Assembly (NCBI GenBank): GCA_047495785.1
Contig: JBLDXI010000028.1
Span: 310,001 to 374,000 of the forward strand
Direction of reading: 5' to 3'
From: Lepidodermella squamata
Taxonomy: Eukaryota; Animalia; Gastrotricha
DNA: 64,000 nucleotides
The notes beneath the pieces are model-generated. The model was not told the DNA's origin, ran no database searches, and saw only the letters and a list, made by a program, of their open reading frames with translations. This document shows, piece after piece, positions 3,639 through 51,813 of this stretch (positions within the stretch are counted from its first letter, which is position 1; the number at the start of each line of letters is the position of its first letter). Both the position numbers and the translations under genes were made by a program.

Positions 3639-4207
3639 AGATCGAGAGGGTTCGGCAGATAACACAGTTGAAAGTCAAGATGCGGAAGCCGTTATTAATT
3701 GACGTGGCTGAAATCCATGATAACATTTTGATGATTATTTTTATTATTTTTTCGTTTTTCTTGCGCTTATCTCACGACAACGAAATTCTGTCGTCACTGT
3801 ATGAATTGTGGCCAAATTGTAAAAGTTCAGGATGAGAATTATTTTCGTGAAACATGGCAATAAACTTTATTTATGACAATAACTTCTGGTTTTAGCCACC
3901 CTCCACGGGTAATTCAACAAGCAAAATATTCGGCTCTGTGTATTAGCGTTTCCGAAAGTCATTTAAAACTTGAATCTTCATTTGTCTTATTATGTAGCAA
4001 CATCGGTGGCCGGCTAACAGCCGTCAATGTGGTCAAAACCAGCGCTGTTCCGTCTCGCAGCCAATTTTATCATGAAGTTGAAGGCTTGCTATTAAAAAAT
4101 TTCCTGATTTTTCAAACGGTTTTGAGCCTATATTAATTCATCAATAAATACCTATATAAATGCAATTTTCTCCTCTAATTTTTGAATTACACTTGATCCT
4201 ACAGAGC

Positions 4208-4365
4208 AGATATCGATTCCAAGTATCGCTTTTAAAAATCAGTGATTTTCCCGATATTAAGCCGCCCTGGAACCTAACATATTTTCTACGTAGTTTAGGA
4301 AACATTTAGTGCGAGGACGCTGAAATTTAGTGCTGGAACCTCATTTTTAATGGTGCCAATATTCT
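4208..4365 (+). repeat. Dispersed repeat (second copy ~5345-5540 in intron 1 of paralog 2; reverse fragment ~28050-28090)
   Basis: Shared GATATCGATTCCAAGTATCG...AAATTTAGTGCTGGAAC. Confidence 0.55.
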
Positions 4366-5074
4366 GAGTTCGTTGAAAATAAACATATTCCTCTATATAT
4401 TGTAAACGTAGCGATATTTTTAAATTCGCGGCCCATCAATTTCGGCATTTTGTCTTTGATCGACGGCAAATTTGACTTGAAAATTTGTCAAACCGCGACA
4501 TTGATCTACACGAATATTGCTACGCCTGCAATATTAAATAACTAATTGAACATTAGTTATCTGACATTTTCCATTGAATTGCTTACAGATTTATTGTTCG
4601 AAATTATAGCAACGTTCGGCTGGCTCTCTCCGCCACTCAACTTCTGATGCGGGAACGGCAGCTCAACATAATGATATAGGATTATAAAACGCGGCACAAG
4701 TATGACTAACAAGTTTGTAAAAGTCCGATTCTTTCAAACGAAATTTGTCGTCTTTCCCCGAAAAATTGTCCAGAATAAAATGACGGTGATTAGCCGTTCT
4801 ACTATCGCTCATTTGACGAGAGGCCCAGATTGTCGTAATATAGGTGAGTGGACAATAATTGAGATGAGCACTGCAAAGCACGAGCGCCGCAGTCGCCTCA
4901 TCGGTGAAGACGCGCGATATTTATTGCAATTATATTAAGGTGCCTTTATTGCGCAATACCTACGTATGAGGCAGTTTAAATACGGCGGCGGAAAATACTG
5001 TTAAAACCAGCCATTCGTTATTTTCTTCTCGTTAAAATTTTCACAGTCGCAAAAGTTGCAGTTGCAGTTTAAGC

Positions 5075-7610: not shown

Positions 7611-7790
7611 CTCATCCATTGAAAGCAGATGCTTGATTCTTCAAAATGCATATCTTTATTGACCTGAGACATTTATTGAACTTATACTGAATAACGTTTC
7701 CTTTTTTCGCCCATATTAACGAATAAACACCTGGTGTATGACCGATGATCTTGCCCGTTGTTTTATTTTCTGTCTAATGTGTTTTCGCTC

Positions 7791-8444
7791 TATCGGTGTG
7801 GGGTAACTTGGCCGGAAATATGGTTTTTTGAACCTATTACGTCTCCGGTAACTTGTTTCGCTTTAAATTTTATACCAAAAAAATCTCCGTTCCATTCTCA
7901 ATCGATTAGTCAATATCCGGTCGACGACCGATAAAGTCAATCGATTCTGTGAAGGTTGAAGTGATCTTGACAAAGTGGGGTAACTTGGCCGCATAACTTG
8001 GCGATGAACCATCTGGCAGAAACTAGGGCGATGATTCATCACGCCCTCTCATATCTAGGTCAAATTTTAGTGCGCATTTCGCACGTTAAAAATCGCCCAA
8101 GTTACCCCACAAAATTCAGGCAATTACCGCTCGCAATTGCGACATCAGTTTTCTGAGTTCAAGGTGTCATTTGAAAGATGTAACCGAGGGGAACCTTTCT
8201 GTGAAATCGCCGTCTTCCTCCGATCCCACTATTCCTTGTTATAAATGCTCAAAATCTCAGCGCCTAAAATGAACGAGTTGGTACTGACTTTCCTTGTCAT
8301 TTAAAAAACGATTTTCGAATTCGGGAGTTGCAGCTCAGGTGGCAAGGAATGTTCCTATGAAAAAAATTTCGTGAACAAGATTTTTCTCGATGTAATATCG
8401 ACCAGAAGGCGACTTTTACGGCCAAGTTACCCCACTCAACGGTA
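7791..8444. mobile_element. Non-autonomous DNA transposon (MITE), TA-flanked
   Basis: Inverted ends GTGGGGTAACTTGGCCG / CGGCCAAGTTACCCCAC, with internal copies of the motif at ~7976 and ~8094; TA on both flanks. Confidence 0.65.
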
Positions 8445-8618
8445 GTTTTTGTTTAATTTTTGCATGGTAAGTAAAGCAGGTCTGATAACCAAAAATAACA
8501 TTTCAACCTAACGCATCCGACCAGTCTCGTTTTTGAGCTTTTTAGTTGATTTTAGCAGGGCCTATCCGATATCTTCAGTCCAAGCGATAAATCATTGATA
8601 AATCATTGACCTTATAAG

Positions 8619-8998
8619 AACAGCTTGGCCTTGATGGAATCCGTTTGCTTATTTGTCAGCAGGAAGGTCATTGATAACTATCGTCCCAAAGAGCCGAGGC
8701 CGTCTATCATCAACGAGCAACGAGTCGTGTACCATTTTAAATGTGCTCGGTGTGATGCTGATTATGTCGGGATGACATCCCGACACTTACACCTACGCGT
8801 TGAGCGTGGACATAGATACACCGAAATCGGTAAACACATGCAGAGCCATGGCGTTGCGAAAGAGAAGATCGACAAGAATTTCAAAGTGCTAATGAAAGGA
8901 CGAAACAAATGGGACTGCCTGATCTTAGAAATGTCGGCAATTAGGAAGATAAAGCCTAATATGAATAAGCAAACGGATTCCATCAAGGCCAAGCTGTT
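8619..8998 (+). mobile_element. 5'-truncated Penelope-like element (GIY-YIG endonuclease C-terminus)
   Basis: VVYHFKCARCDADYVGMTSRHLHLRV...GKHM...LILEMSAIRKIKPNMN matches the PLE GIY-YIG pattern (VY-x-C-x2-C-x-YVG-T-R-L-R). A perfect 35-bp inverted copy of the 3' end (8964-8998) sits at the 5' end (8619-8653). Confidence 0.8.
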
Positions 8999-10386
8999 TA
9001 CAGAGCCCATTTTTCATGAAAAATGCAAGCGGACAATCAAGCAGAAAATTAGCCGGAACTGCAGGAGAGCTCTGGGGATTTTAGTTTCTATTATTTAAGA
9101 TGAAATTAGGATCGTATGAGCCATTTCATTTTCTTCGTCAGACCCGCGCGGCATAAAACAGGTGTTCAAATTCGCTAAGGAATACAAAGTAGACATTTCT
9201 ATCATGCTTTTGCGTATTTAGATTACTTTTTGCTCTACGCAACCATGTAGTGTGAATTCCTTACTTTATTTCGAATAATTCAAGCTAAATAATAAATTCT
9301 GAAAGTGAAAACGCATCAATCATCAACCAGCACCGCGCCCGCCACCGAACTGTACTAGGTCCATAATTCTGCACCCGCTGCTACTTTCGACACGCGGGCC
9401 GTAGTTTGAGATAGAACTACCGCCTCAATGAGCATACAAATCTCATCTAAGAAGGACACTCGCAAAAGACTTTTACTGACTCTACCATAGCAAAAATTGA
9501 AAGTTGCTTGCCATTTGACAATTATATCTATATCTAATATACGCATTCTTCTTTGGAGCCTGACGATGGCCACTTTCTGGCGGAAACTGTTGCTCCATCA
9601 CTCTTTAAAATAAGAAAGGCTGTGAAACTGCCATTGCTTTAGAGCAGCTTCTGGGTGTTCCTGATGATTGCCGAACCCACACGATAACGCGACCCATGTC
9701 ATATCTAAATACGATGTTAGGATTTTCTTTGTTCAGTTGTTTCAGATAACATTTAACGGCATGCATTTTGTATATACCCTAACTAAGTCGCTGATTTCCC
9801 GCAGGTGACTGATGTTCCACAGCGTTGATTTCTCGGTTTCTTGACTTTATTCGCCCAGAACTTTCCTCACTATTGCAGTCATCATAATTTGTTCAGATCA
9901 CTTGATTCCTGTTTTGATTATTTCTGGGGATTTTCACGTACGCCTTGGTTGAGAGGCTCTCATACTAGTAGGTCTAATGGCGACTGCGGTCCGAGAAAAT
10001 TTCTTGGATCAAGAATTACTTGAAGGTTGAAGGCTGAAGATAAGGTTGTTAGGAATGCTAAAGTAACCTGGGAAAGCCGAATAACCCTGCCTAGCCATAG
10101 AGAACGTAGAGCGCAAACTTGTAGATCATTACGTGTTCTCCATGTGCCAAAAGCTGAGATCATTAGTATTGCAGAAAGCTTTTCGACGTTAATGAAGCCC
10201 AAATGCATCCTATAATTAGACTCAGAAATATTAATTTCTCACGTCCCGATCTGAAAAATGACACAGTTGCACGTGGTTAATTATTAATTCGCACGCCACC
10301 CACCTGAAAGTTGAATGACTTCAACCTCAAACTGCCCAATGATACGAAATGCATAGCTAAACGAAAATATTGACAGGGAAGAGAAA

Positions 10387-12894
10387 ATGTCCCTTCATTG
10401 GAATAAATTTCTGCTTCTGATCATCATCTCATACTCACACAGCAGTGATGTTGAAAAACGGTTTCCGATGACAATGCAGATGCCTGAGGTGCAATCGGCA
10501 AGCTCTACAGCATCGACGAGGTCGAAAGTACTGCGGATCATCACGCCCGTTTCGTATGGAGGCACGGCCTTACCCCTTGGCCCAACCGTTTTGATCAGCC
10601 AGCAACTAGCTCTTGACTGGCTCCACGGCCAATCGCGATGGCTTCCGAATTATCGTCTGGAATTAGAGCTATTTGACGATGAGGTAAGTTGTGAGTCAGG
10701 TTTGATCTAATGCACCGCACTTTCTGAATCTTCTTAGTCTGATGATGCTGCAATGATCGGCGGTTTGATGTCGAAGCTACTTGAGAACGACGAACTCCCA
10801 AACAGGTTACCTCTGATGGGCCTGGCTGAGTACGCCATGATCAGCCAGCTAGTTACCGCCTACATTATGAAGACTTACGGAACGATAGGGACAAGCACTT
10901 ATCCATTACCTGAAATATTCTTCAAACGGAACAAATTCCCCAACTATGTCTCATTTGGTGAGCGGCAGGACTACTACATGATATCGGTGGCTGAATTTGT
11001 GAGCAGGATGGGCTGGAAACGTGTGGCCTTAATAACAGACACAAATTCCTACAATCAGCTGGTCGAACAGTACCATTTGAACAATCTTGAAGCTAACAAC
11101 ATAACCCTGGCGTATATGGCCAAGTTTAGAGAGACTGCAGATGATGCTTATGAGATGGACTCTACATTCTGGGAGATGAAACAACGCGAACCTCGAATAC
11201 TATTGAACTGCGCCATTAATAGTATTACTGTAGCCTGTTATCTGAACAAATATGGCATGTTTGGCCCTGGTTACGTGATTATTGGGTATTCCTGGACAAA
11301 CTTCGACCACACTACCCCTATTCCAGATATTGTATCGCAATGGTGTACTCGGGAGATGATTCTCCAAGTTCTGCCGAGCACAATTTTCTATGGCGATGCG
11401 CCACTCTCTGATATTTATGGTGCTGATTTCAAAGGCACAACAGGATTGACCAAATTGGAATTTCTAAGCACAGTCAAGTCGGGAGTTGACAACCCCGATC
11501 TCGCGCTAGGGCTAGACTATTGGGGGCCTGCTTACTACGACAAAATAATACTCGTGGGATCTATTCTCAACATAACAGAGTCGATTTTAAACGAGCAAAA
11601 CGAAACGCTCTCAGATTGGACAACAGCCTCGCAGAGATTCAAAAGTAACCCAGGTCGAATTCTGGATGTGATTAAGCGAGCTATAGGTCGGATCAGTTTG
11701 GGTGGCTTGAAAGGTGAATGGAGCTATGACTTGATCAATGACTGGTCAAACGGCTCTATGCCAATCGTTTATACACAGACCCGGATGAAAGGCAACTCTA
11801 CCTACCAAGATGTTATTGGCTACTACAAGTCCAATCAGAAACCGAATAATAGAACCGTCATTTTACGTGACAAGCTCAAATGGTCGACTTCAGGCGGGAG
11901 TGCACCGAAAGACCAGCTCTTTGTTGTATCCCAACAAGAGCCTTTAGTTGCAACTGCAATCAGTTCAACATTTTTCAACATTGCCGCAGTCTTCATATGT
12001 CTTACAACTGGTCTTGCAGTTTCTATTGCGGTGAAACACTGTAAAAAGCAGCAGTATCCATTCGCTTTTTGTGATATCCGAATCCTGGCAGGAAACATCA
12101 TGATGCTGACCAGCATATTTGTGACTCCATTCGGCATCAAAAATGATCCTAGCCTAAGTTGCACCTTTTCGATCGTGCTCGCCGCAATAGGTATATCGAT
12201 AGGTATCGGAACCATTGAAGAAAAATTGAATATAGTTTTGTTGAAACTACGAGTTATCGGTAAGATAAGAGTAGTCCCGTCCAAGCAACTTCTTTTCATT
12301 GCAAACCTATTGATTGTAACCATGGTATGTTATCAACCAATCTCGGCTAAGAAACAACTACTAAGTTACGAATTTTCTAAAACCGACATAAGTTTAGCCT
12401 ATCAATACGAGACGACGGAGTGTGCTGTTGTTGAGTCAATAACCCAATCCCTAGCTTCAACAATCCTTGCGATATTTGCTATCGCTGGGGTTGGAATCTC
12501 ACTGATATCATTAACACTGGCTTCCTTTAAAGTTCAGTCTGTCGTAAAGCGATCTCGAAATTACAGCGATATCGACGCACATTTTCTCGCGGATACCCAT
12601 CGCACTTCACTGTCAGTTTTCATCCTTTTGACTATACTTTTCGCCGGCGTCTTTATTGGTCTGATTGTTGGGTCGAGTAACGCGGCGATGATCGAACTGC
12701 ATGCTTCTATTGTATTCTCGATTGCCACCTTGAATGCTGGGGTAGTGGCAGCCTGTTTGTTTCTGAAAGTTGACCCGGGTATACGCCCATCAACGTCTAT
12801 CCTTGGATTCAGTCGGGGCAGCGGAATTCATCTAACGGCTCGCGATGAGCAGTTATACGCGAACCGAATATCACGGCTATCGCGAAATAACTAA
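10387..12894 (+). CDS. Divergent class C GPCR (GABA-B-receptor-like): signal peptide, Venus flytrap domain, 7TM
   Basis: Exons 10387-10683 and 10738-12894 (54-nt GT-AG intron, phase 0). LPNYRLELELFDD, KFPNYV, MGWKRVALI and YGMFGPGYVII are GABA-B-like VFT motifs. No Cys-rich linker. Seven hydrophobic segments at the C-terminus. Confidence 0.8.
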
Positions 12895-29952: not shown

Positions 29953-31241
29953 TATGCTGTTAGAGTCGATTCTGAGCTCTCAGATTTCTTCTATGTTACC
30001 AGGGGACTAAGACAGGGTTGCCCGTTGTCTCCTTTGCTATTCATAGCGACCTTCAACAAAATTTGCGAAAAAATATCTGCTGAAAAATTAGGCTTTCCTA
30101 TTAGCGAGACCGCAAACAGCGAGACCGCTATGAGCGAGACTGATTTCCTAAATTTACTAGCGTTTGCTGACGACGGAACACTTTTAGGCATGAACCACGA
30201 CGAAATTTCACGACTACTTCACATTTTCGATTTGGCTTGCACCGAATTGGGTCTGAAAATTAACGCGGCAAAAACTCAATATATGATTATTTCTAGAGAC
30301 GAGTCAGCCACTCAAAATTACGAATTGGAATTGAACGGGAAAAAACTTGAAAAAGTGACCAAATTTAAATATTTAGGGAGCATTATTACTAGTGACGGCA
30401 AAATCGATGAGGAACTAAACTACAGAATTTCTAAGGCAGGCAGTGTTTTCGGCGCCATGAATAAATTCATGTGCAACAAAAGTCAGGTTTCCATAGCTAC
30501 AAAACTTAAGGTACTGACATGTGTTATAATACCTACCATCATTTACGCCTGCGAATCGTGGAACATATCGATAGCCCAAGAAAATAGACTAAACACTATA
30601 GAATATCGATGGCTTCGATCTATAGTAGGTGTCCACCTAATGGACTATATTCCAAATATAGACATTCGACTTGCGTTATGCGGAGGTCTCATTGAAGTGA
30701 GCCGCATTGTTGAAAAACAAAGGCTAAGGTATCTAGGTCACATAATTAGGTCACGTGACTATGACGTAGAAGGACTAATACACAAAATATATATTTGGAC
30801 GCCTCCGCTTGGGTGGTTTGCACCCAGAGGTAGACCTCGAACCAGATGGATCAACGGAGTGCATAGAAGCTTAATTAAAGTAGGTCTTACTAAGGAAATT
30901 CGCCGGAAAAAGAAAACCAATAAGAACAATAAGGTCAAGGATAAGAAAAATAAAGCCACCAAGAAACGAGAAAATAGAAAAAATCCCGGCGAAAAGGATT
31001 TTGAGATCAAAATTATTCCCGATGTCCAACTAGCGGAATCGGTTTCTTTTGAAAAAGATGAATGGCGCATGGTTGTTAACTCGATTGAAAATTACGAATT
31101 CTATACAAAAAGCAGAATCCTCGACTGTGGGGGTGGGTGAGGATCATTCTTCGCCTGCCTTCGCCCTCTTCAAAACCGGAAACGGTACACGACGCTCAGT
31201 CCCGAAGAGGATAAATAAAAACATTATTATTATTATTATTA
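29953..31241 (+). mobile_element. 5'-truncated non-LTR retrotransposon (RTE-like), RT C-terminal half
   Basis: Open frame 29953-31140 with GLRQGCPLSPLLF, FADD, KFKYLGS and RGRPRTRW; (ATT)n tail 31223-31240; 13-bp TSD GTTTCCCCTCTAA at 29940-29952 and 31242-31254. Confidence 0.92.
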
Positions 31242-37542: not shown

Positions 37543-39224
37543 TTAACATTGGAGCTTGTGGATCTGGCCAATGCTGACGGGCTCGACAGCCTCGAGCTTC
37601 TGGCCCTTGCGGTCAACGCAGTGGCAAACGGAGCCGATGCATTGGATGGGGTTGTAGCTGCCGAGTTCGTCGCACGAGTAAGTCAGACCGACCATGCCAG
37701 TCTTCATGAAATCAGCCTGAGCACGGGCGCATTCGCAGTCCATCTTCGAGGCGAATCCAACGTTAGCAGAGTGGCCGGTGGGGATGCCCTGGCTGTCAAC
37801 GCACTGGCAGACGGCTTCGCGGCACTGGCGGGGGTGGTACGAGCCATCTTCGAGGCACTGAGGCTTGTGGCGGCCGAGGCACCTCGGGCAGGTCTGCTCG
37901 GAGAGTTCGACCTCACGAGCGCAGGCGCCCTGTTCGACGGCTTGGCGCTTGTCAGCAGCGCAGTTCAAGGTCGAGATCATGTGGATGGGGACGGCTTCGA
38001 TGGCTTCAAGACGCTGACCGACCTGGTCGACACAGTGGCAAACAGAGCCGATGCATTGGACGGGGTTGTAGTTGCCGAGGGCGTCGCACGAGTAGGTGAG
38101 ACCAACGAGGCCAACCATGCCCTTGCGCTGGTAGTCGGCTTGTTTGCGAGCGCATTCTAAAACAGAAAATTGTGATCAATGAATTCGACAAGGCATTTTT
38201 TAATTTTCGGAAGGCATTGATTTAGGGGTCGAGACTCTGAGATTTGCTTACCGCAGTTCATATCAGCAGCCTGGGAAATGTGAGCCGAGACTTCAGTCGG
38301 GCGGCCCTTGGAGTCGACGCAGGTGCAGACGGAGCCAAAGCACTGGCGGGGGTGGTACGAGCCATCTTCACGGCAGACTGGTTTCTTCTGGCCAAGACGA
38401 ACCGGGCCTTGTTCGAGGAGCTCGAGCTCACGGGCGCAGGCTCCCTGTTCAACAGCATCACGACGACGACGGACCAAGCAGCCGCCGAGTTCTTCCTTGC
38501 GCTCCTCGGGCCTTGATCCGAGCGAGTCGATCGGCTTGCCGAAATCGTTGACGCAATAGCAAACGCCGCTACGGCACTGAACACGCTCGTAGTTGCCCAT
38601 GGAATCGCACTGGCGGGTGAAGGCGATCGTCGACGTTTTGTGGTCGTCGCGGTCACGAACGCATTGGCAGTTCATCTGCTGGTGTTGGCCGATGGAGACG
38701 GCGAAGTCTTCGATTTGCTTACCGCGCTTGTCGACGCACATGCAAACAGCTTCGCGGCATTGGACTGGGGCGTAGGTGCCATCTTCGAGGCATTCGGGCA
38801 AATGAGCGCCCATCATACCGTTCTGGATGTCGCGGCTTTTGGACAGGACTTCAGCGTGACATGGGCCCTTGACTAGGGTTTCTGTAATACAAGTTTGATC
38901 GTTAATTTTGAGAAATGTATTTTTTAACTTACCCAGCTTGACACACTGCTTGGTAGCTGGGTGGCACTCGAGGCCCCTTCCGCACTCTTTCTTAGACGGG
39001 GATCCGAGGAGGTTCGAGGCGCAAGATTCGCCTTCGTTCAGTTGTTTAACGCAAGCCGGGCAGCAACCACAGAATCCGCCGTGGATGTCAACGCGACCAT
39101 CGCAAGCTTGGATCTCGAGCATGGCCGAGGAGCAGTCGGCATTGCTGCAGATATCGGGCGTGCAAATGATAGCTGAGCACACTTGCAGGGTGCAAGCAGC
39201 CGCAATTGCTAAGATGAATCTCAT
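37543..39224 (-). CDS. Secreted IGFBP-like domain plus six thyroglobulin type-1 domains (thyropin-like protease inhibitor)
   Basis: Exons 39224-38933, 38881-38252, 38156-37543 (introns 51 and 95 nt). Signal peptide, GFCGCCPACV motif, six QC...CxCVD/N..G modules. Confidence 0.9.
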
Positions 39225-39252
39225 TTCGGTGGGTAGAACGAACTTGAATAAC

Positions 39253-39286
39253 GACTGGAATTAACTAGGTGAACCCGCCTTTTATA
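39253..39286 (-). promoter_or_regulatory. TATA box and Inr-like element of the thyroglobulin-repeat gene
   Basis: TATAAAA on the minus strand at 39280-39286, with CCAGTC ~25-30 nt downstream and the ATG 30 nt further. Confidence 0.6.
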
Positions 39287-40770
39287 GGGTCTCTCCTGGT
39301 TATGGGAGTCGCCATCGGGTCCCAGAGTTTTCTCACGCATGGCTGTTTTTTTATTATTAGGGCTAAGTGCTATCTAATTCGAGCTATTATCGTGTTGTTT
39401 TTGCTGCCTGGTTGGGTCCATAATGAGCGCGTTGTTGCTTTATCTCGAAAGTTCGGTGGGAGACACGAAAAAAGGCAAAGGCAATCGCCTATCAAGCTAT
39501 ATATCAAGCTCACGCCGTGGTAAAAATATTGAGCTAGGGCATGCTAGATAATGCATAAGTACTTGTTACGTTGTTATTATGGACAAAACATGATCTTTCA
39601 TCAACCATTAACCAGAAAGTTAATCAGTGAGTTGATTTGCTGAAATCGATGCATTCTCGCCAGTAGAAGGAGGCCTGTCACACTTTCGTATGTCGGCTGA
39701 GCTGGGAGTTGTCACGCTTGGTGAGCGCTCTAACCTGCGAACGAGAAATAGGCCTCAGTGAAGCCTCGTTTATGAAAGGCGAAGCCATATCATAGAGTTC
39801 AAAAATTATTATCAGTGAAACCTGAAGCCACAAAATTATATTTGAAGCAAGCTGTCTGCATAGATCCTTCCCTCAATCCTTCAAGGGTAGATCTGTGTGC
39901 CATAATATGAGACGTACCAGACAGAATAGGTCCTCATCGTTTCTGTTCTTGCTTAACACAGTTGGGGTGACTACGCTCTGATGAATTAACTATCAACATT
40001 TCCCTCTGTCAAATTCTTTTTCGGCTCTAATAATAAGGGCCCTTTATATACGGCACGTCTCACTTAGTGTTGTGATGTATAGAAGTTGGCTGAATAGTTT
40101 AATTTAATAATTCTCGACACGGAAATGTGCTATCGTCCGCATCCTGAGCTATATAATACAATGACCACAGGTTTTGCTTCGATTTGACTCCTCAAGGGCC
40201 TCCATAGCAATGGCCTCTCGCCGAGCCCTGGACCGTCGACTCCTGCGAGGTGGACTCTGTGATTGCGCAGCTGTGAATAACGCGGGTAAGGCATTGCACA
40301 GATGTGTTAAAAAAGGCTGAAAGAGAAATAGGCTGAATTAAAACTGCCAACACTTCAGTCTTTTCACGTGAGCATTATGAACACCGCCATAGAGAACGGG
40401 ACTCAATGGAACCAACCAATTCCCTTTTTACGTATCCGCCTGACGAGGTGGTCATTCAGGGGGTGGTTATTCTGCCTATAATTCAAGTTTTTAATCGATT
40501 TTTCAGTTTTATAACACCCGTTGTGTAAGCGTAGTGACATCAATTGCACAGTATAATTTATTGCCGACACTTCAAGCGATAAGTCCCAAGCCGAGCAGTA
40601 GTTGAAATCACACATTCACCCACACGAATAATATTGCATACCCCCGTAACCAAACCTAGAACCAAACATATCGATATCTTTCACCTTTAAAGAAATTAAG
40701 GCGCGGTGACAAAGCAGCGAAATCCCCACGGTATGGCGTGGCGAACGATATCTTATGTCGATGCCGCTGA

Positions 40771-43213
40771 CTAAACCTCACGCGGTCTGCCAGGACGACC
40801 CTTGCCAGCAGGCGCCGGTGGTGGAGCTGGGGCGTACACAGGAGCAGCTCTCGGTGTCTTGATGTCCGCCATGCCCTGACGGGTCAAGCGGCTCTGCTCG
40901 GATGGAACTTCAACCTCACGCGGTCTGCCAGGACGACCCTTGCCAGCAGGCGCCGGTGGTGGAGCTGGGGCGTACACAGGAGCAGCTCTCGGTGTCTTGA
41001 TGTCCGCCATGCCCTGACGGGTCAAGCGGCTCTGCTCGGATGGAACTTCAACCTCACGCGGTCTGCCAGGACGACCCTTGCCAGCAGGCGCCGGTGGTGG
41101 AGCTGGGGCGTACACAGGAGCAGCTCTCGGTGTCTTGATGTCCGCCATGCCCTGACGGGTCAAGCGGCTCTGCTCGGATGGAACTTCAACCTCACGCGGT
41201 CTGCCAGGACGACCCTTGCCAGCAGGCGCCGGTGGTGGAGCTGGGGCGTACACAGGAGCAGCTCTCGGTGTCTTGATGTCCGCCATGCCCTGACGGGTCA
41301 AGCGGCTCTGCTCGGATGGAACTTCAACCTCACGCGGTCTGCCAGGACGACCCTTGCCAGCAGGCGCCGGTGGTGGAGCTGGGGCGTACACAGGAGCAGC
41401 TCTCGGTGTCTTGATGTCCGCCATGCCCTGACGGGTCAAGCGGCTCTGCTCGGATGGAACTTCAACCTCACGCGGTCTGCCAGGACGACCCTTGCCAGCA
41501 GGCGCCGGTGGTGGAGCTGGGGCGTACACAGGAGCAGCTCTCGGTGTCTTGATGTCCGCCATGCCCTGACGGGTCAAGCGGCTCTGCTCGGATGGAACTT
41601 CAACCTCACGCGGTCTGCCAGGACGACCCTTGCCAGCAGGCGCCGGTGGTGGAGCTGGGGCGTACACAGGAGCAGCTCTCGGTGTCTTGATGTCCGCCAT
41701 GCCCTGACGGGTCAAGCGGCTCTGCTCGGATGGAACTTCAACCTCACGCGGTCTGCCAGGACGACCCTTGCCAGCAGGCGCCGGTGGTGGAGCTGGGGCG
41801 TACACAGGAGCAGCTCTCGGTGTCTTGATGTCCGCCATGCCCTGACGGGTCAAGCGGCTCTGCTCGGATGGAACTTCAACCTCACGCGGTCTGCCAGGAC
41901 GACCCTTGCCAGCAGGCGCCGGTGGTGGAGCTGGGGCGTACACAGGAGCAGCTCTCGGTGTCTTGATGTCCGCCATGCCCTGACGGGTCAAGCGGCTCTG
42001 CTCGGATGGAACTTCAACCTCACGCGGTCTGCCAGGACGACCCTTGCCAGCAGGCGCCGGTGGTGGAGCTGGGGCGTACACAGGAGCAGCTCTCGGTGTC
42101 TTGATGTCCGCCATGCCCTGACGGGTCAAGCGGCTCTGCTCGGATGGAACTTCAACCTCACGCGGTCTGCCAGGACGACCCTTGCCAGCAGGCGCCGGTG
42201 GTGGAGCTGGGGCGTACACAGGAGCAGCTCTCGGTGTCTTGATGTCCGCCATGCCCTGACGGGTCAAGCGGCTCTGCTCGGATGGAACTTCAACCTCACG
42301 CGGTCTGCCAGGACGACCCTTGCCAGCAGGCGCCGGTGGTGGAGCTGGGGCGTACACAGGAGCAGCTCTCGGTGTCTTGATGTCCGCCATGCCCTGACGG
42401 GTCAAGCGGCTCTGCTCGGATGGAACTTCAACCTCACGCGGTCTGCCAGGACGACCCTTGCCAGCAGGCGCCGGTGGTGGAGCTGGGGCGTACACAGGAG
42501 CAGCTCTCGGTGTCTTGATGTCCGCCATGCCCTGACGGGTCAAGCGGCTCTGCTCGGATGGAACTTCAACCTCACGCGGTCTGCCAGGACGACCCTTGCC
42601 AGCAGGCGCCGGTGGTGGAGCTGGGGCGTACACAGGAGCAGCTCTCGGTGTCTTGATGTCCGCCATGCCCTGACGGGTCAAGCGGCTCTGCTCGGATGGA
42701 ACTTCAACCTCACGCGGTCTGCCAGGACGACCCTTGCCAGCAGGCGCCGGTGGTGGAGCTGGGGCGTACACAGGAGCAGCTCTCGGTGTCTTGATGTCCG
42801 CCATGCCCTGACGGGTCAAGCGGCTCTGCTCGGATGGAACTTCAACCTCACGCGGTCTGCCAGGACGACCCTTGCCAGCAGGCGCCGGTGGTGGAGCTGG
42901 GGCGTACACAGGAGCAGCTCTCGGTGTCTTGATGTCCGCCATGCCCTGACGGGTCAAGCGGCTCTGCTCGGATGGAACTTCAACCTCACGGGGCTTGACA
43001 GGACGACGCTTGCCAGAAGGGGCGGGTTGCGGAGCTGGGGCGTGCACAGGATCAGGTCTCGGTGGCTGGATACGGGTCAAGCGGCTCTGCTCGGATGGAA
43101 CTTCAGCGGAAACCGTGGCGACCTTACGGGTAAAGTTTTGAACATTTTATACAGGGTGCTTTTATACGGCGCAACGAACTTACCAGAAGTACCACAGCGG
43201 CGTAGTGGAGCAT
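40771..43213 (-). CDS. Secreted Pro/Arg-rich tandem-repeat precursor A
   Basis: Exon 1 43213-43184 (MLHYAAVVLL), 61-nt GT-AG intron, exon 2 from 43122 (VATVSA-EVPSEQSRL...). One variant unit, then 15 full and 1 partial 46-aa repeats. Same gene structure as paralog B. Confidence 0.8.
40774..42990. repeat. 138-bp coding tandem repeat, ~16 apparently identical copies
   Basis: Unit encodes TRQGMADIKTPRAAPVYAPAPPPAPAGKGRPGRPREVEVPSEQSRL on the minus strand. Confidence 0.97.
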
Positions 43214-45889
43214 TTTATTACTAGAATTTGAAATTCGGTCCGAAAAAGTTTAGCGTTTTGCAAAGCTAAATTCTTGATAATGAAAGAGAGTTAGGCTCGT
43301 TCCTTCCTTCTCGGGTGAATTTTCCACCTGCCGAGCGCCATGATGTTTGGGAGTTTACATTAACTTGCACCCTTGTTCGGGTCATCATTCCGGTGTTTTT
43401 TGCACGGACTGATCTACCATCATAATATGTTGGCATAACGGGGAAGAATGTGCGTGAAAAATTTGAAAACCCACATGCACGCATGCCATTGTACGTGAAA
43501 ATTACGCCATGTTACCCCACTTGGCGTTTCAGGTTCTAGCGAGTCATTCAGTTATTAAGAAATACTGTAACGCAAGTGCAGTATTTTAATAAAAACGGAA
43601 ATATAAAGTAAAAAATTGAAAGGGAGAGGTTATGAATAATATAAAACATCTTCTGTGAGCTTTGTAGTGGATAGCGGAAAATATTCGCCTCACTGCCAGC
43701 TTTTCAGAACCAAGGCGCGGAATAGCGACCTGATGAAGGCGAATATTTTAGCCATTCGTATAAAAGCTTCCAGATATAGTTGTGTTATCCGGGCCACTAT
43801 CATCAATTTCTTCACAGTAAAGTTACCTGTTCAGACGGATTAGGCAATAATATTGAAAATTAAAATCCAACTTGTAACTTTGCATGAAATTTGCAACAGC
43901 GAATGATTTTCAACTGCTGAAAATCATCCATCACTTTTTTCTGCGATTTAAAACTCCACGCTCATCCGCATCGACATTGAGCGCATTAATCTCGAGGTGA
44001 AAAATGGAAAAATGCCAAGTCTATCTCTCGAACTGCAAATTTGCATCGAGCCGCTCAATCTTGGGTGTCAAGCTGCTACGTAGCTTCAAGAAGAATTGTC
44101 AGTCAACCAGCGATATGGCAACGACATGTTCGGCCCGACTGTTTGTTGCACCATCCTCCTTTGGCAAGTTGAGGCTCGCTCAAGTCTCTAAGCAATCGGC
44201 AATAATTCTCGGCCGCGGTAAATCTTTCGCTGCCTCTAACCTGATCCAATGGCATGCCCCGCTTGTGGATATCTCTTATAATTTGCGACAAATCCCTCAG
44301 CCTTGTTGATTTTCTTTCAGAAACAGCCCAGGATAGCAGTACTTATTTCGGGCTGTTTAATGGCATATTTCCCGCTATGATAACCCGGATACTCCAGATT
44401 AATTAGACGGAGACTTGGAATATTGATGAGAAAAATAGTTGGAAATGGCAAGGAAACAATGCAAAATTGCAGGACAGGATACATAGCAGGAGCAGGATAA
44501 GTGAGTTATTTCGTTGTCCGTCTCAGTCAAATATGCTTGTGCGGAGACTCTGGAGGAAGAAAATGCTCAGGAGAAAGAAAGAGGGATGGATTGCACTTTA
44601 ATCATGAAAACTAGGCTAGTAACTGCTAAAAATAAGTTGAACCGTTATATGTCCGGCTCCCTATCAGCGGCGGCTTAGATTTCATACTCGCTTCTTTTTG
44701 TCGAAACTTCTCTAAACTCATTGAAGCATGAAAACGCGCTGTAAGGAAAAAATTGACTCACTGCGAAGATCACATTCATCGAAATGTAACATGTGGGATC
44801 GAGAAGAAAAAGGCTGTAATCTGTATTTTTCGACCAATTTCTGCACGCTGATAAAGTTTATTAGCTATAATTCGCCAAGCTATCAATTCATAGGTATATT
44901 TTTGCTCACGCATTCACAAATTTAATTTAGCTAAATTCAGTGTTAAATACAAACGTAAAAACTGCAAATAGGAAGAAATTATTGCAAGCAAAAGCAATAC
45001 TATAAGTGGGAAATTCACAAGAATGATGAAATTCGATATTCCATGCGATTTTACAAGAAATATCCTTTAGGCCAATTACTTGTTTCGGGAGATGAGCTCC
45101 GTGCCGTAAACCCGACTGCACCAGTTGGTACTAGTTGCTTTCTGCGTTTTGAGCGACTGCCTCTCGCCGACACAAACCCTGGAAGATCGCCCAAGCCCAA
45201 TTTGGATCTTGGGTAGTCGGATTGCATAGAACGACGCTTGCATAGCATATAACCTATTGGAATGTGCGTTTCAAAATTATAGGTATAACATCGATCATGA
45301 AAGCGAGAATGAACTTATACCAGAATAAGAGACAAGGCAACGACGAAGTTGTTCATCTTCTAACAGGAACTTTTTATTTTCAACTATAGGTATATGAGTA
45401 GCAGTAGAGCGAAATTTGACAGAAATGAATTTCGTCCTTCTATCTTTCCTCATTCTTCAGTTAACGTGCAACGCACCTGGCGGAATGACAAACAAAAGGA
45501 GGAAAGTATCACGCAAAAACTCTAGGGAAAGAAATGAGCGCCGAAACGGGTGGCTGTTTAAATTCTCATATATTATCTCTCCTTCTCAACAAGCAGGAAA
45601 TTAGTCAGCGGAAAATTTGTAAGAAAATTTAGCTTGGATGAGTGGATCGAGTACATATTTGAATTGTGTGCAAATTTGAGCTATGGATCTCTAAAATCAC
45701 CAATCGCCAATAGATTGAGAGATGAACAAAATCTATAGCAATTCACTAGAAGCAGCCGATCAATTTCTCTGTCACTTGCCTAGATAGTAGCTTAAGATTG
45801 AAAACTACCGCAACAATATCGTTAAATTTCTTTCAAAACCTGTTCCAATAACACCTGAGGGTCCTCCTTTTATCGGAATTAACGGTAAG

Positions 45890-46200
45890 CAGAACCAAAC
45901 TTTCTATTAGCGGAACCTAATTTTGGAATTTTCTGGTGGCCTGAAATGACGTTTTGCTTATTTCTTGCGGGTCAAGATTGGGCAAAGGAATTCTGGAAAA
46001 ACACCTGTAAATTCAGCGTAAAAGTCTCTTTAAGACAGAGTGTTCAATTCAGAGCTCATTGTTCACCTAAAATTTGTAGAGTTATCTGAAAATCTGAGAA
46101 TCTCAGTCTCAGCATATTTCGACTTTGGTTCCGCGAAATGTCAATTTGGTTCTGCTCACCGTAAATTTGGTTCCGATAAAAGATATTCCGAATACCTGAC
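45890..46200. repeat. Second copy of the GGTTCCGC-unit MITE-like repeat
   Basis: Same inverted unit layout as 300-700. Confidence 0.6.
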
Positions 46201-46428
46201 CGGTCATAATACACGTGGATGACCCTCAAAATTGGGTCTAACTGAAATCCTATCGTTTTCGGATTTTCGGTGCTTGTGAAACCTTTCATTGACCGTAATT
46301 CGGGTGATTTTCCGTAATCTAGCGTATCACTTCTGGCACGTGCTCTACTCTAGAACGTTCGTTGGTGCAAATTTTTTTCATTCATCTTTTCTAGGCTGAC
46401 AAAGTTTCTCGCCTGGAAAATTCGCTAA

Positions 46429-46740
46429 ATGACTGTGAAAAAAGTGTTAATGAAATAGCCAAGCTTACTTCTTTGCTTTGATTCAAATTAACATCGATCG
46501 AATCGGACGCTTTTTCCCAGTATGCCATGTTGGTTGTAAATTTCAAAGATGATAGAACAAGGCGAATTTGCGATATTATCGCGGGTGAAAATCGAACTAT
46601 CGATAAGACGCCGATTTTCGGCCTAGATTGGGACAACTTTGGTCAATCATCAGCAAGCGTCTTGTAGGCTTTTGTTTATTCTACTTATCATCTTTTCACA
46701 AAGACCTGCAACTCATTTTGCGGGTGAAAAACAACCATAC
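46429..46740 (+). pseudogene. Truncated, deleted copy of the 5' part of sulfotransferase 1
   Basis: Near-identical to 49020-49510 (e.g. AGAACAAGGCGAATTTGCGAT...CAGCAAGCGTCTTGTAGGC), with deletions and a frameshift. Confidence 0.8.
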
Positions 46741-46880
46741 AAACTTACCGACTCAAAAACCATAAAACGCCGCTATGAAACGCACCGAAAACAATCACAA
46801 TATGCAATATGCGATTTACCCTTGTCCAAAAATAGAGAAACAGCGCCCACAAATCTAAGACAACTCTAACTCAGTAGAAC

Positions 46881-47265
46881 TTATTCAACCTTGTGGCCAT
46901 TTCCCCTCGGGTTCCTGTATTTGCCAGAGGGTGCTGGTGCTGGAGCTGGCCCACGAACAGGGGCAGCTCTCGGCGCTTTGATGTCGTGCATGCCTGCACC
47001 GCTCAGGCGGCTCTGCTCAGATGGAAGTTCAACCTCACGGCAATTTCCCGTTCTGTATTTCCAAGCGATAGTCGGTGTTGGAGCTGGCACAGTGACACCT
47101 CTTATTGGCTCGTTGTCGCGCATGCCTTCAGCACTCAGGCGGCTCTGCTCAGATGGAACTTCGCCGAAAACGTGGGCGACCTTATGAGAAATGTTTTGAA
47201 ATAGAGCAATCTCGCTTTAGAGGTAGACAACTTACCAGAAGTGCCAATGTAGCGTATCGTAGCAT
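46881..47265 (-). CDS. Secreted Pro/Arg-rich precursor B (two-unit paralog, ~109 aa)
   Basis: Exon 1 47265-47236 (MLRYATLALL), 55-nt intron, exon 2 47180-46881 (VAHVFG-EVPSEQSRLSAEGMRD...REVELPSEQSRLSGAGMHDIKAPRAAPVRGPAPAPAPSGKYRNPR...). Confidence 0.8.
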
Positions 47266-47530
47266 CTTGTCTCAAAGATTCGAGAATAAGACCGAAAATG
47301 TTGGAACCCTCAAAAGGAAAATGCTTGATAATGAATGCGAATAAAGCTTTAGCCTTACTCCCCGGGAAAATTTTTCACGTGCCTTACGGCGCATCGGTCT
47401 TTGGCAAATTACGTTGTTTGCACACTGGATGCTTTTTTCGCGGACTAGTGAATGCAAATACAAATATGTAATTTACGTTAAAATATAAGCTCGAAAGCAA
47501 CCATGAAAAATAGCTAGGAATGAGCTAGGA

Positions 47531-47768
47531 ATCTCAACCCAAAGATATTGGGTTCGACTCTAACTTTTTCATCATATACCCTTGTGGTAATACCACTACG
47601 CAATAGTGCTCAGTGATAGGAGTTATGCAGATTCGGCAACTTTGAACATTTTAGTGATTCTGAGCATAACCGAGTTCAAGCCGACTCCTACAGAAAGATC
47701 CCTACTGCGTAGTGGTATCACCTCAAGGGTCTCAACCCAAAGATCTTGGGTTCGACTCCAACTTTTTC
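47531..47768 (+). pseudogene. tRNA-derived (Glu-like) pseudogene or SINE-head fragments
   Basis: TCCCT...TAGTGGT (A box), TCTCA, GGGTTCGACTCC (B box) then a T run at 47699-47768; partial duplicate at 47531-47568. No acceptor-stem pairing. Confidence 0.45.
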
Positions 47769-47967
47769 CTCAATTTTTTTCAAGTTTATTAGTTTTTTGG
47801 GAATGACGGAGTGACGAAATGACGAAGCAACGAGAAGAAGCCACCACCTCAAAAGCTAGCTATTTTTTCATGTTATCTTGGCACGCGCGCTCCGATCCTG
47901 CAAAACCGAAGTAGAATGCATAGCAGCAGTCCTGAGGGGACAGATAAAAAGCATAATCTTCAACTTT

Positions 47968-48077
47968 AGGGGTGGGTGATGACCATTATTCGCCTACCTT
48001 CGCCCTCTTCAAAACCGGAAACGGTAAAAGACGCTAGTCGAGAAGAGGCTAAAAAATAAAACAATTATTATTATTAT
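47968..48077 (+). mobile_element. 3'-end-only copy related to the RTE-like LINE
   Basis: Matches 31130-31240, including CCTTCGCCCTCTTCAAAACCGGAAACGGTA and the (ATT)n tail. Confidence 0.8.
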
Positions 48078-49019
48078 ACGTGCAGAAGTGAATATTTGAT
48101 AAAATGAGGCGAATAACAAGGTCGTCGAAATCTCTTGCTGGTAGCCGTCACGATGCAAACCAGGTTTTCCTATTCAGGTCGAAATTGCATGATCCGGATT
48201 CGCGGTTCACGCTGCAACAGCAGAAAGTTGGAACAACAAGCCAGAGCAGGATTTGAGGCGCCAATGGCTGCTTCCTCGGCAACTCTTCGACGTCGATTGG
48301 CAAAATTGACCCTAAATTGAGGATTCATTCCACTTGGAAATAAACGCAGATCCTATTACGTTATCTTCAGTTAACGTTCAACGCACTTGGCGGATTGACA
48401 AATAAAAGGCTGAATATCACGCAAAAACCCTCTGGGAAAAGAAATAAGCGCCGAAAAGGGTGTTGATTAAACATCGCATATCGTCTTTTCTCATCATGCA
48501 GAACAATTTTAATTGTGTGCGAATTTAAGCTAAAAAGTCGCCAATCGATTAATAACCGAATCGAATTTGAGAAAACAAAATCTATAGCCTTGAACTAGAA
48601 GCAGGCAAACAATTTCTGCGGCGCTTTCCTATTAGAGCTATGGATAGGCATAATATAAGCAAAGATCAAAGAAGTCCCGTCAACATTCTGCCACCTTATG
48701 CATGACATTTCGCCGACTCAGATGCCAAGCTTCAACAGGCTCATTGTTTATTTCGTTTCATATGTAACAATTTTTGACCGTGCAGCAATTGAATTTATAG
48801 GAAGCTGACATGGGATACTCCCCGGGCCCTAATTGACGGGATTTCAATAGTAAAAATGTCCGATTTTCTATCACCCATCACCCTAATAACGGGTGACTTT
48901 TTTTCTGGTGTATCGCATTGGCACGTGCTCTAATTTTTGAACATTCGTTGGTGCAACGTGTTTCATTCATTTTTTCAAGCAGGCTGAACAAATTTATTAT
49001 TGCCTGGAAATATTGCTAA

Positions 49020-50386
49020 ATGACTTTGAAAAAAAGTTTTTATGAAATAGCCAAGCTTACGTTTTCGCTTACATTCGGTTTCATCGTTGCGCTTAGCCTG
49101 AGAAATTTTGAAAAATTACCAGACGATTTTTCAAGTGAAAAACTCAAATTAACATCGATCGAATCAGCAGCAATCGACGCTCCAAATGTATGCCCAGTAT
49201 GTCGTTATTTCGGTTTTAAATTTCAAAGATGATAGGTTTTGAATTTTCTAGGAAGATGCGACCTTGAAACCACAAAATGCGTATCGGCAGAGTAGAACAA
49301 GGCGAATTTGCGATGTTATCGCGGCTGAAAATCGAACTATTGATAAGACGCCGATTTTCGACCTAGATTGGGACAACTTTGGTCAATCATCAGCAAGCGT
49401 CTTGTAGGCTTTCGTTCCTTTTTCTATTCGTTTCACACAAAATCATTATTTTAGACAGTGGTGGGAGAATTTGTACGTCTTCGAAAATCTGCAACTCGTT
49501 TTTTGCGGGTAAATTATGAAAATAATCCTAGAAAAATCAAGATTATTCAGGATATTTTATTAGGTCACCTTCGGTTATCAATGAAGTGATCCTCACCTTT
49601 TTATCCGATGTCGATCAGCGAAACCTAGGTCCAACGAGACCAGGCGAGAGAAAATACCAATTTTTACGCTTGAGTGATTTCTCGGCTGACAAAGCAAAGT
49701 GGATGATGGAAAGCTTCAAAAAAGTTGCCTTCATACGCGATCCATTGGAACGTATGCTGACTCTTTGGCGCGATCATCTGTCAGAAAATGCTACAGATAA
49801 GCAGTCGTTTAAGGTAGGTGTACCACTTGGAATAATATTTTGAGGAAATCTTAAAAGCTAAAAATCTAAAATTATTGCGATTCGTGGTCAATTTTCCTTT
49901 ACTATTATTCTAATTCAATCCAGAAATCAAAACATTTCTTAGGGCCTTGGCGGGATTATTTTGGCGAAGTTGAACAAAACGAACGAATCTAAGCAGCCAT
50001 TGCCTATCGATCTGATCGATTTTTTGCGATACATGGCGGTCGATCAGCCATCGAAGGGCCTCGACGCCAATTTACGGCCACAGCTCGACTCGTGCCACTT
50101 TTGCGCAATTAATTACAATTTTATTGGTCTTCACGAAAATTTGGATTGTGAATTCGACTACGTTACACGAATTATTGGCAATCGAAGCTCCCTAAATCGA
50201 TTTCCCAACAACAGAAGCGATTACGAACTTGTAAAATCAATTATTGAGAATCGGCGGAATAAAAGGAGGGTGATTTTAGTTGATAAAATTATTCGCCAGC
50301 ATTACGAAACTGATTACTGGCTTCTTGGCTATGATCGGCCCTATTTTAACCTAGAAAATGACAAATCGAAGAAAAATAAAGTCTAA
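49020..50386 (+). CDS. Carbohydrate sulfotransferase-like protein 1 (Sulfotransfer_2 family; PAPS motifs degenerate)
   Basis: Type II TM anchor; exons ~49020-49196, 49252-49403, 49455-49508, 49564-49813, 49943-50386; FIRDPLER, RPQLDSCHFCAINYNFIG, YETDYWLLGY. Confidence 0.8.
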
Positions 50387-50444
50387 TAATAATTCCGTAA
50401 AATTTGCCTGTTTTTATTATATAGGTATTTTTCTATTCATAAAA

Positions 50445-51813
50445 ATGAGTCTAGGTCATCCTAATAAAATTCTCGCGAATTTAAGATTATTGCTCGCCTT
50501 TATTATTGGTGTTTTATTGGCTCTTCACATCGATTTATCGGCAAAAATCGAAGTACGATTGTCCAGCGATAATTTCTCGCATCAACGATGTGAGGTCAGT
50601 TTTTTCAACAATTCAGCAACAAATTTCAAATTCACATCAGCCTGATGAAGTGATAGCAAGACGGTCGAAGGCTCGAATTCGAAGGATGAAAGAAATTTGC
50701 GAGATAATTGAGCGGCGAGGCGACCTTTACCAGCCGCTAAAAACTCCGGAATGGCGATTTTTCTCTTGGGCAGCCGCTAACAACATCACTTCAAATTGCT
50801 AGTATGCTTTGTGAAATTTCAAAAATATTTAAATTAATTTTTAATTTCAAATATCAGCTTGCCCGATTTTTGGTGGAACGATCTGGCGATAAATGACAAA
50901 TACAAACTTGTTTACTGCGCGTAAATTCACTTTTATTTTTTTTTTAATTTTTAATTTGTCTGATTTTCTGAATTTATTTAATTTATTTTTACTGATTAAA
51001 GGACTCCGAAGGTCGGTAATACCAACGTCCGGCTTTATCTGAATCACCTAAGTGAAAATCCCGAGATGGAATCCTACCCATACAACCGATCTGAAATGCT
51101 GCAAATTCATCGGCTCGGATCGGGTCTGAAACACTCGCGACGCTTGACCGAATATTCGGTTAAAGAGGCTAAAAAAATCATGGCTACTTTCAAGAAAATC
51201 GCGTTCATTCGCGATCCAGTCGAGCGTGTCGTGTCGTCGTGGCGTGAAAAGTTGTCCACGGCTGAATCAGACGGCATTTGGCGAGATCACTACAAGGTAA
51301 GTATTTCGAAAATTTTCAATTTTCGGTAGCTTTCGAATAAGTATTATTAAAAATTCAATTTTTAAGATAGTTGGTTCAGAGGTGCGGCAAAGAATATGGA
51401 GGAACGCCTCGAAGTCAGAAATCGATATCGGCCTGCCAGTTCGACTCGACGATTTCATCAAGTATTTGAATACTGAAAATTACCCGCGAGAGCTGGAAGC
51501 TCATTGGCGCGGTCAATTGTATCTGTGCCATTTCTGCGCTATCGACTACCATTTTGTTGGCCATTTCGACAATTTAGCGTGTGATTTGGAATATTTTGCC
51601 AGGCAAATTACTGGCAGGAAAAAAGTGCCGAGATTACCGGAGCCATCTGATAAACCAAGAGCTGGAACCGATCGGTACCAGTTTGATACTAATACGAAAG
51701 GTGCGGCTTACTTGGACTTGGAAGCTAGGAAGACGTTGGATCGTGTTGTCGCGAAACATTTTTCAATTGATTATTGGTTTTTAGGCTTGAAAATGCCCAA
51801 TTTTTCGCATTAA
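50445..51813 (+). CDS. Carbohydrate sulfotransferase 2 (CHST8-14 / Sulfotransfer_2 family)
   Basis: Exons ~50445-50594, 50641-50801, 50858-50920, 51002-51296, 51367-51813. 5'-PSB motif LVYCATPKVGNT is assembled across an intron; 3'-PB motif FIRDPVERVVSSWREK; HWRGQLYLCHFC. Confidence 0.88.

Follow-up and report, generated by a model that had tools for sequence, protein, structure and literature searches.

A 64,000-nucleotide stretch of the genome of the gastrotrich Lepidodermella squamata (assembly GCA_047495785.1, contig JBLDXI010000028.1, positions 310,001 to 374,000 of the forward strand; hereafter the window, whose own numbering is used below) carries two paralogous genes, A and B, which very probably encode secreted, disordered, cationic proteins built of tandem repeats. 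The interpretation we prefer, and hold only tentatively, adds to this that the chain acts whole, as an extracellular polycation. A sequence-only reading of the same DNA had proposed a new family of secreted proline/arginine-rich precursors processed into many peptides, with an uncleaved structural or adhesive protein as its alternative. We consider the uncleaved protein at least as likely as the cleaved precursor. New in the present analysis are a second copy of the locus on another contig (C34), the finding of a single frame that is open in all gene copies, the conservation of gene B and the predicted disorder of the chain.

Gene A was delimited on the minus strand (43213..40771) by reading and translating positions 40500-47500. 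Gene B lies on the same strand (47265..46881) and has the same layout with two diverged units. In each, a 16-residue predicted signal peptide, split after codon 10 by a phase-0 intron, leads into the repeat units. Gene A has 17 of these (one variant followed by 16 identical ones). These counts, the split signal peptide and the general form of the unit, an acidic spacer (E)VPSEQSRL followed by a cationic core ending in GKGRPGRPR or GKYRNPR, were as the sequence-only reading had described them. In each unit the head (EVPSEQSRL) is invariant and mildly acidic, the rod that follows is rich in Ala and Pro, and the tail is basic, of the form K-x-R-P-x-R/K-P-R. Units of gene A end in GKGRPGRPR or GKRRPVKPR and those of gene B in KYRTGNCR or GKYRNPR. 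The 16 units of the A array were base-for-base identical in a script comparison, the sole difference being the stop codon that replaces the GAA with which another unit would start, and the array closes exactly at a unit border. Tandem Repeats Finder returned a period of 138, 16.7 copies and 99% matches for this gene, and the 138-bp unit is GC-rich (65% GC). The signal peptides of A and B have 9 of 16 residues in common. The position and phase of the intron are the same in gene A, in gene B and in the copies of both genes on C34 (A′ and B′).

The similarity between the two genes extends into their 5′ flanks, which share the exact 12-mer TTCATTATCAAG, with a chance support of 6 in 100 at one mismatch. 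Words resembling kB and GATA sites in this common promoter block were considered as a sign of immune induction and dropped, being too short and unanchored.

A six-frame search of the 121-Mb assembly traced this second copy, which covers the whole locus, to the end of contig C34 (1362000-1381999). It is colinear with window positions 50650..39106 at 85-97% identity and contains B′, whose protein is 90% identical to that of B, a 9-unit A′ and, as A″, the same gene again in exact inverted form. The unit number of A therefore stands at 17 in the window locus and 9 in the C34 locus, the variant first unit, missing from A′, having been lost or gained, and all length differences between the two locus copies are in frame. 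This bears out the earlier suggestion that the gene was amplified by intragenic repeats. The array would grow and shrink through unequal crossing-over, which would also keep its units identical. Exon 1 of A′ differs from that of A by one synonymous change, and the A′ array shows a three-unit higher-order repeat. Amino-acid changes among A units between the loci all fall in the last eight residues (KGRPGRPR, KGRPLKPR or KRRPVKPR), with four non-synonymous changes in this basic tail and none in the other 38 codons. For gene B, identity between the loci was 93-97% in the exons, 89% in the intron and 81-82% in the flanks.

The arm that carries A″, 5.5 kb from the end of C34, is inverted and 100% identical to its counterpart (arms at 1-1757 and 3291-5047 of the fetched C34-end segment, 1533 nt apart). 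The inversion may be a real recent duplication or an assembly fold-back, and because of the latter possibility A″ was left out of independent gene counts. Thyroglobulin-domain genes at 375-376 kb of the window's contig (C28) also have twins on C34, and the duplicated block, of at least 27 kb, may have arisen by segmental duplication or be a divergent haplotype that was retained. That C34 might be a haplotig of C28 over its whole length was rejected because two control stretches of C28 (330-334 kb and 700-704 kb) had no second copy in the assembly. Both versions of the locus were present in a DNA sequencing run (X1), the window version at ~44-59x and a C34-type version, ~90-95% similar, at ~32-46x. 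Summed unitig depth over the repeat in X1 came to ~24-31 unit equivalents, a very rough figure, such depth not being a copy number. At that roughness it is compatible with a large array and speaks against inflation of the array by the assembly.

There is strong reason to regard A and B as real genes. Four gene copies whose flanking DNA differs by 6-19% have all kept the start codon ATG, the hydrophobic 16-mer, the reading frame and the place of the intron, and the frame of the signal peptide is the only one open in all of A, A′, B and B′. The ratio of non-synonymous to synonymous substitution rates (dN/dS) in the sense frame was 0.31 between the A unit and unit 2 of B (dS 0.76) and 0.38 between B and B′; for the A unit and unit 2 of B, the codon-aligned antisense frame gave 1.00. 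The dN/dS and identity comparisons rest on short sequences and their figures are indicative, all of them being in agreement. The head EVPSEQSRL is invariant as protein in all 31 distinct units, and its DNA differences are synonymous only (TCC/TCT, TTG/CTG). A homolog search with this head had been suggested earlier. Across the 121-Mb genome its degenerate DNA pattern had 38 matches, all within these genes and their C34 copy, and the reversed control gave 0 matches.

The opposite strand was also considered. The codon-aligned antisense frame is open through the A array (40774-42981, plus strand) because the sense codons avoid TTA, CTA and TCA, and it contains a stop in B′. Over gene B two plus-strand frames are open (46891-47204), of which the other antisense frame is closed in A. 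An antisense gene was rejected on the grounds that its frame is broken in B′ and that a dN/dS of 1.0 looks neutral.

Signal-peptide cleavage was predicted between VSA and E in A and between VFG and E in B, applying the −3/−1 rule by eye. Mature A would have 777 residues, a mass of ~82 kDa, a net charge of +68 and an isoelectric point (pI) of 11.4. It is composed of 22% Pro, 15% Ala and 13% Arg, lacks Cys, and has a grand average of hydropathy of −0.94. A single A unit has a pI of 10.8, a net charge of +4 and 21.7% Pro. Mature B is predicted to have 93 residues, a pI of 9.7, 14% Pro and one Cys. AlphaFold2, run on B with a four-sequence alignment, returned almost no secondary structure (mean predicted local distance difference test score 55.6, predicted template modelling score 0.13), and the chain is accordingly predicted to be disordered. 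Neither A nor B has a hydrophobic tail of the transmembrane or glycosylphosphatidylinositol type, or an N-glycosylation site (N-x-S/T), and to judge from their sequences both products look secreted.

Searches for relatives, in which the A and B models were used exon by exon with the exons unjoined, agreed with the earlier suggestion of a new family. Neither protein matched Pfam. A word-indexed search of 5.8 billion proteins with exon 2 of B and of A found no relatives, and an exhaustive HMMER profile search of 1.84 billion representatives found no true ones, its single match, a Sushi-repeat protein, being judged spurious on reading. The protein atlas, the PDB sequences and the JGI metagenome contigs likewise held no relatives of A or B, and peptide strings of the unit, searched literally in 8.4 million papers, were not found. 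Elsewhere in the window, a 713-residue open frame (10753-12894, plus strand) combines a multi-pass membrane part with an ANF-receptor ligand-binding domain, as class C or GABA-B-type receptors do. It too lacked relatives at E<=1e-10 in the word-indexed search, so the source lineage seems to be poorly represented in protein libraries. The blanks for A and B therefore point to an orphan family within sequenced life only and are no proof of absence in close relatives. On present sequences, A and B would be lineage-restricted genes.

Under the reading that we tentatively prefer, the exported chain would remain uncut and work outside the cell as an extended polycation. With acidic heads alternating with basic tails, it would be able to adhere to itself and to polyanionic material, such as sulfated glycans, mucus, and microbial or substrate surfaces. 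The A product would then form part of a coat, glue or matrix, on a principle like that of cationic Pro-rich tandem-repeat coating proteins, with B as a shorter and diverged relative built on the A module. We infer action as a whole chain from several features. The unit junctions are without canonical dibasic sites, and the RLTR of the A unit is not retained in B. Sixteen units without one substitution are typical of the concerted evolution of repeat proteins, which favours a chain that acts whole, and orphan secreted tandem-repeat proteins kept identical in this way usually do so; the rotifer MMR genes, which have the same gene plan, are a documented example (PMC2746195). The composition of A (22% Pro, 15% Ala, 13% Arg) also counts for this reading. 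Mussel foot protein 1 and the mammalian basic salivary proline-rich proteins, secreted proteins that serve as coatings or binders, combine a high pI with 20-40% Pro, a chain that is extended and unfolded, and tens of short, near-identical repeats. They have no sequence relation to A and B, whose unit is longer and has a conserved acidic head and only one Tyr. Since the salivary basic proteins are cut at RSxR sites into smaller pieces, a structural and a processed protein are not mutually exclusive.

Several points weigh against a chain that acts whole. A paralog of two units and 10 kDa would be unusual among structural proteins and is what one would expect of a peptide precursor. The unit starts exactly at the predicted signal-peptidase site, the last unit retains the R-EV junction, and all junctions have Arg at P1 together with a basic residue at P6 or P4, features that would fit a polyprotein cut between units. 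The unit head is more conserved than the remainder, as in many defence-peptide precursors. The assignment of the genes to a tissue, gland or material is hypothetical, and a search of sequencing runs for RNA containing the locus (42900-47400) gave none, returning a single DNA run.

Directly upstream of gene B, two open reading frames (ORFs; 49961-50386 and 51382-51813, plus strand) match carbohydrate sulfotransferases (PF03567) over the C-terminal half of that family and may be two tandem genes or two exons. As evidence for a chain that acts whole they are suggestive at most, and their position beside gene B may be coincidence.

The chief rival is a polyprotein that is cut into peptides, which we regard as possible and less probable than a chain that acts whole. 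A convertase-type enzyme would cut after the Arg preceding each EV(E/–)VPSEQ head, and maybe also after RLTR in A. The products would be 16-17 cationic Pro/Ala/Arg-rich peptides of 33 to 46 residues from A and two different ones from B, antimicrobial or otherwise bioactive, with the repeat number acting as dose. Monobasic convertase sites generally have Arg at P1 plus a basic residue at P6 or P4. The junctions fit cleavage of this kind because Arg stands at P1 in every unit variant, with a basic residue at P6 (RPGRPR, RPLKPR, RPVKPR, RTGNCR) or at P4 (RNPR), and the coincidence of the first unit with the predicted signal-peptidase site and the R-EV junction still present on the last unit speak for the same interpretation. 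RLTR before the A core is a minimal RxxR site. The furin motif named in the sequence-only reading is thus found in A; it does not hold for B and B′, where it is lost (RLSA, RLSG). Confinement of the A-unit differences between loci to the 8-residue basic tail is a pattern of diversifying effector peptides, and the small two-peptide paralog beside an amplified gene recalls apidaecin (PMC11549390) and Baramicin (PMC8423362). Against cleavage, the junctions lack KR and RR, mostly lack Arg at P4, and have Pro at P2. The central rod APAPPPAPA is uncharged, unlike known proline-rich antimicrobial peptides (PrAMPs), the proteins show no similarity to any antimicrobial peptide or neuropeptide family, and, as noted above, no RNA run matched the locus.

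The limits of the PrAMP class given by Welch et al. 2020 (PMC7736402, Box 1) are at least 25% proline and a charge of at least +1, the motif PRP being indicative and not essential; members have antimicrobial activity with an intracellular target, the 70S ribosome or DnaK (PMC7736402). Proline, whose values depend on hypothetical cleavage points, amounts to 27.3% in the 33-residue A core and 35.7% in the variant core, both within these limits, and to 21.7% in the whole unit and 12.1% and 21.2% in the two B cores, which fall below and count against the peptide interpretation. The charges all lie above +1 (+4 for the unit, +5 for the A core, +2 and +5 for the B cores). PRP occurs once in all of A, in the variant unit, and not in B.

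The sequence-only reading had likened the genes to apidaecin precursors, and of this likeness the layout stood, with a signal peptide followed by 17, 9 or 2 units. Apidaecins and other Type II PrAMPs have a conserved C-terminal PRPPHPRL with a penultimate Arg and a terminal Leu, and apidaecin precursors of bees and wasps carry a processing motif like RR-EAEPEAEP between peptides (PMC11549390). In A and B the PRPPHPRL end is absent, the units ending in GKGRPGRPR, GKRRPVKPR, GKGRPLKPR, KYRTGNCR or GKYRNPR. A motif of the RR-EAEP type is absent as well: the junction consists of PR followed by EVEVPSEQSRL(TR), without RR or KR, and the spacer is free of the X-Ala and X-Pro dipeptides that had been expected by analogy. 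Pfam, phmmer and hmmsearch gave no homology to apidaecin. Since the defining end and processing motif are absent and homology was not found, membership in the apidaecin family was rejected. What the two systems share is a signal peptide, multi-copy cationic Pro-rich segments (some identical), a short conserved spacer, a copy number that varies by gene, and the presence of several genes per genome. They differ in having no sequence similarity and in the unit, which has 46 residues with an Ala-Pro rod in A and B and 15-34 residues in apidaecin. Apidaecins are moreover limited to bees and wasps, and the present genome has no arthropod cuticle genes. Support for a peptide precursor, which is possible, does not go beyond the shared layout.

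The Drosophila Baramicin (PMC8423362, PMC9246212) and lepidopteran lebocin-type (reviewed in PMC11678341) genes are similar to A and B in that one secreted precursor holds tandem peptide repeats and that paralogs have fewer units. They differ in their clear furin bounds (RxxR/RXKR) and in peptides seen in haemolymph, whereas here such sites are partial, with RLTR in A only. Multi-copy PrAMP precursors have so far been reported from insects only, namely apidaecin, riptocin and Galleria peptides (PMC11678341). If the peptides of A and B were antimicrobial, which we think improbable, the genes would encode the first host-defence polyprotein of a multi-copy Pro/Arg-rich kind from outside the arthropods, the apidaecin strategy having been reached independently. 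Such a system would comprise a 9-17-fold amplified peptide, a monobasic junction between Pro-Arg and Glu-Val, and a diversifying basic tail. A classical neuropeptide precursor was also compared. In these, copies are bounded by dibasic KR or RR, often with Gly before the site for amidation. The corresponding segment reads AG-K-G-R in most units and AG-K-R-R only in the variant units, and dibasic sites occur neither at the junctions nor in B.

It is unlikely that the locus is non-functional or non-coding, that is, a GC-rich 138-bp minisatellite open by chance beside a decaying small gene, with fortuitous signal peptides and introns. The missing RNA match and the lack of homologs would suit such an origin, a stop-free GC-rich unit of 46 codons is not rare, and both the array and gene B are free of stops in the codon-aligned antisense frame as well. 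It is opposed by the retention, in four copies with diverged flanks, of the start codon, the hydrophobic 16-mer, the unit head and a GT...AG intron placed at the same codon, by the exclusively open sense frame with its dN/dS of 0.31-0.38, and by the protein-level invariance of EVPSEQSRL. The exact closure of the array at a unit border, and an AATAAA ~200 nt downstream in both genes, argue in the same direction.

Least probable is an uncleaved, fast-evolving surface protein for recognition or signalling, whose repeat number and tail variants would carry identity, like the MMR/MRP proteins of the rotifer Brachionus. The Brachionus MMR (mate-recognition) genes have a surface product that works uncleaved (PMC2746195, PMC3495898), and share with A and B orphan status, a 16-codon signal peptide, near-perfect head-to-tail repeats under concerted evolution and a repeat number that varies across paralogs and copies; the gathering of variation in one short segment of the unit would also be in keeping with recognition. 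However, MMR motifs are 87-92 residues long, acidic (pI ~4), predicted helical and globular, and N-glycosylated, in intronless genes with a truncated last motif, whereas units here are basic, disordered, Pro-rich, 46 residues long and free of N-x-S/T, the last one is complete, and an intron divides the signal peptide. General library searches returned no relatives, no MMR sequence having been compared directly, and the resemblance would be one of architecture, not of sequence or chemistry.

If the chain is cut, its products would be a new class of cationic peptides, 33-46 residues long and easy to synthesise, in an animal group for which hardly any immune effectors have been described. They would also be a case of convergent evolution of dose by repeat number. 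If the chain acts whole, it would be a candidate component of an extracellular material (coat, glue or mucus binder) of a lineage that has been little studied. In both cases the locus is a clean example of a taxonomically restricted gene with a repeat number that is about two-fold higher in one of its two copies in the genome than in the other. Its practical value is modest at present, expression and function being predicted only.

The coordinates of the individual features of both genes are collected in the table below.

Table. Features of genes A and B in the window (positions in window numbering)
Feature	Position	Strand	Description
Gene A, 5′ flank aligning with gene B flank	43214..43376	-	~160 nt before similarity fades; exact 12-mer TTCATTATCAAG at 43273-43284
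Gene A, exon 1	43184..43213	-	ATG and 9 codons, MLHYAAVVLL, first part of predicted signal peptide
Gene A, intron	43123..43183	-	61 nt, GTAAGT...GTAAG, phase 0 after codon 10
Gene A, exon 2	40771..43122	-	starts VATVSA, then EVPSEQSRL
Gene A, exon 2 start	43105..43122	-	VATVSA, end of 16-residue predicted signal peptide
Gene A, variant first unit	42982..43104	-	41 residues, EVPSEQSRLTRIQPPRPDPVHAPAPQPAPSGKRRPVKPREV
Gene A, array	40774..42981	-	16 nucleotide-identical units of 138 bp (46 residues) each, EVPSEQSRLTRQGMADIKTPRAAPVYAPAPPPAPAGKGRPGRPREV
Gene A, stop codon TAG	40771..40773	-	directly after the EV trailing the last unit
Gene A, AATAAA, candidate poly(A) signal	40557..40562	-	208 nt past stop; consensus match only
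Gene B, 5′ flank aligning with gene A flank	47266..47432	-	carries TTCATTATCAAG at 47324-47335
Gene B, exon 1	47236..47265	-	MLRYATLALL
Gene B, intron	47181..47235	-	55 nt, GTAAGT...ATAAG, phase 0
Gene B, exon 2	46881..47180	-	VAHVFG, two diverged units, tail GNGHKVE, stop TAA (46881-46883)
Gene B, AATAAA, candidate poly(A) signal	46675..46680	-	200 nt past stop; consensus match only

Between genes A and B, positions 45920-46221 of the window belong to a very high-copy dispersed element. Its contig depth in run X1 was ~2,000-10,000, compared with ~50-58 for single-copy DNA, and it showed many joints and strand switches. A 21-bp tandem repeat of 2.5 copies (46124-46175) lies inside this stretch.

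At the level of the whole genome, neither a covariance model nor a 21-mer search allowing 2 mismatches detected let-7. Cuticle genes with the R&R motif (Chitin_bind_4), nematode cuticle collagens and arthropod 7SK were also absent from the genome in a search validated with Thyroglobulin_1. A rotifer spliced-leader sequence gave 0 matches, a result that carries little weight. The assembly seems to lack the mitochondrial genome, since it has no COX1 contig, and the organism looks unusual or thinly sampled.

Elsewhere in the window, a reverse-transcriptase (RVT_1) fragment at 30025-31140 on the plus strand is presumably the remnant of a retroelement. On the minus strand, 37543-38118 and 38157-39224 encode two adjacent secreted proteins with three thyroglobulin type-1 repeats each. 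At its start, the 355-residue protein of this pair has a signal peptide together with an IGFBP-like motif (GCGCCxxC).

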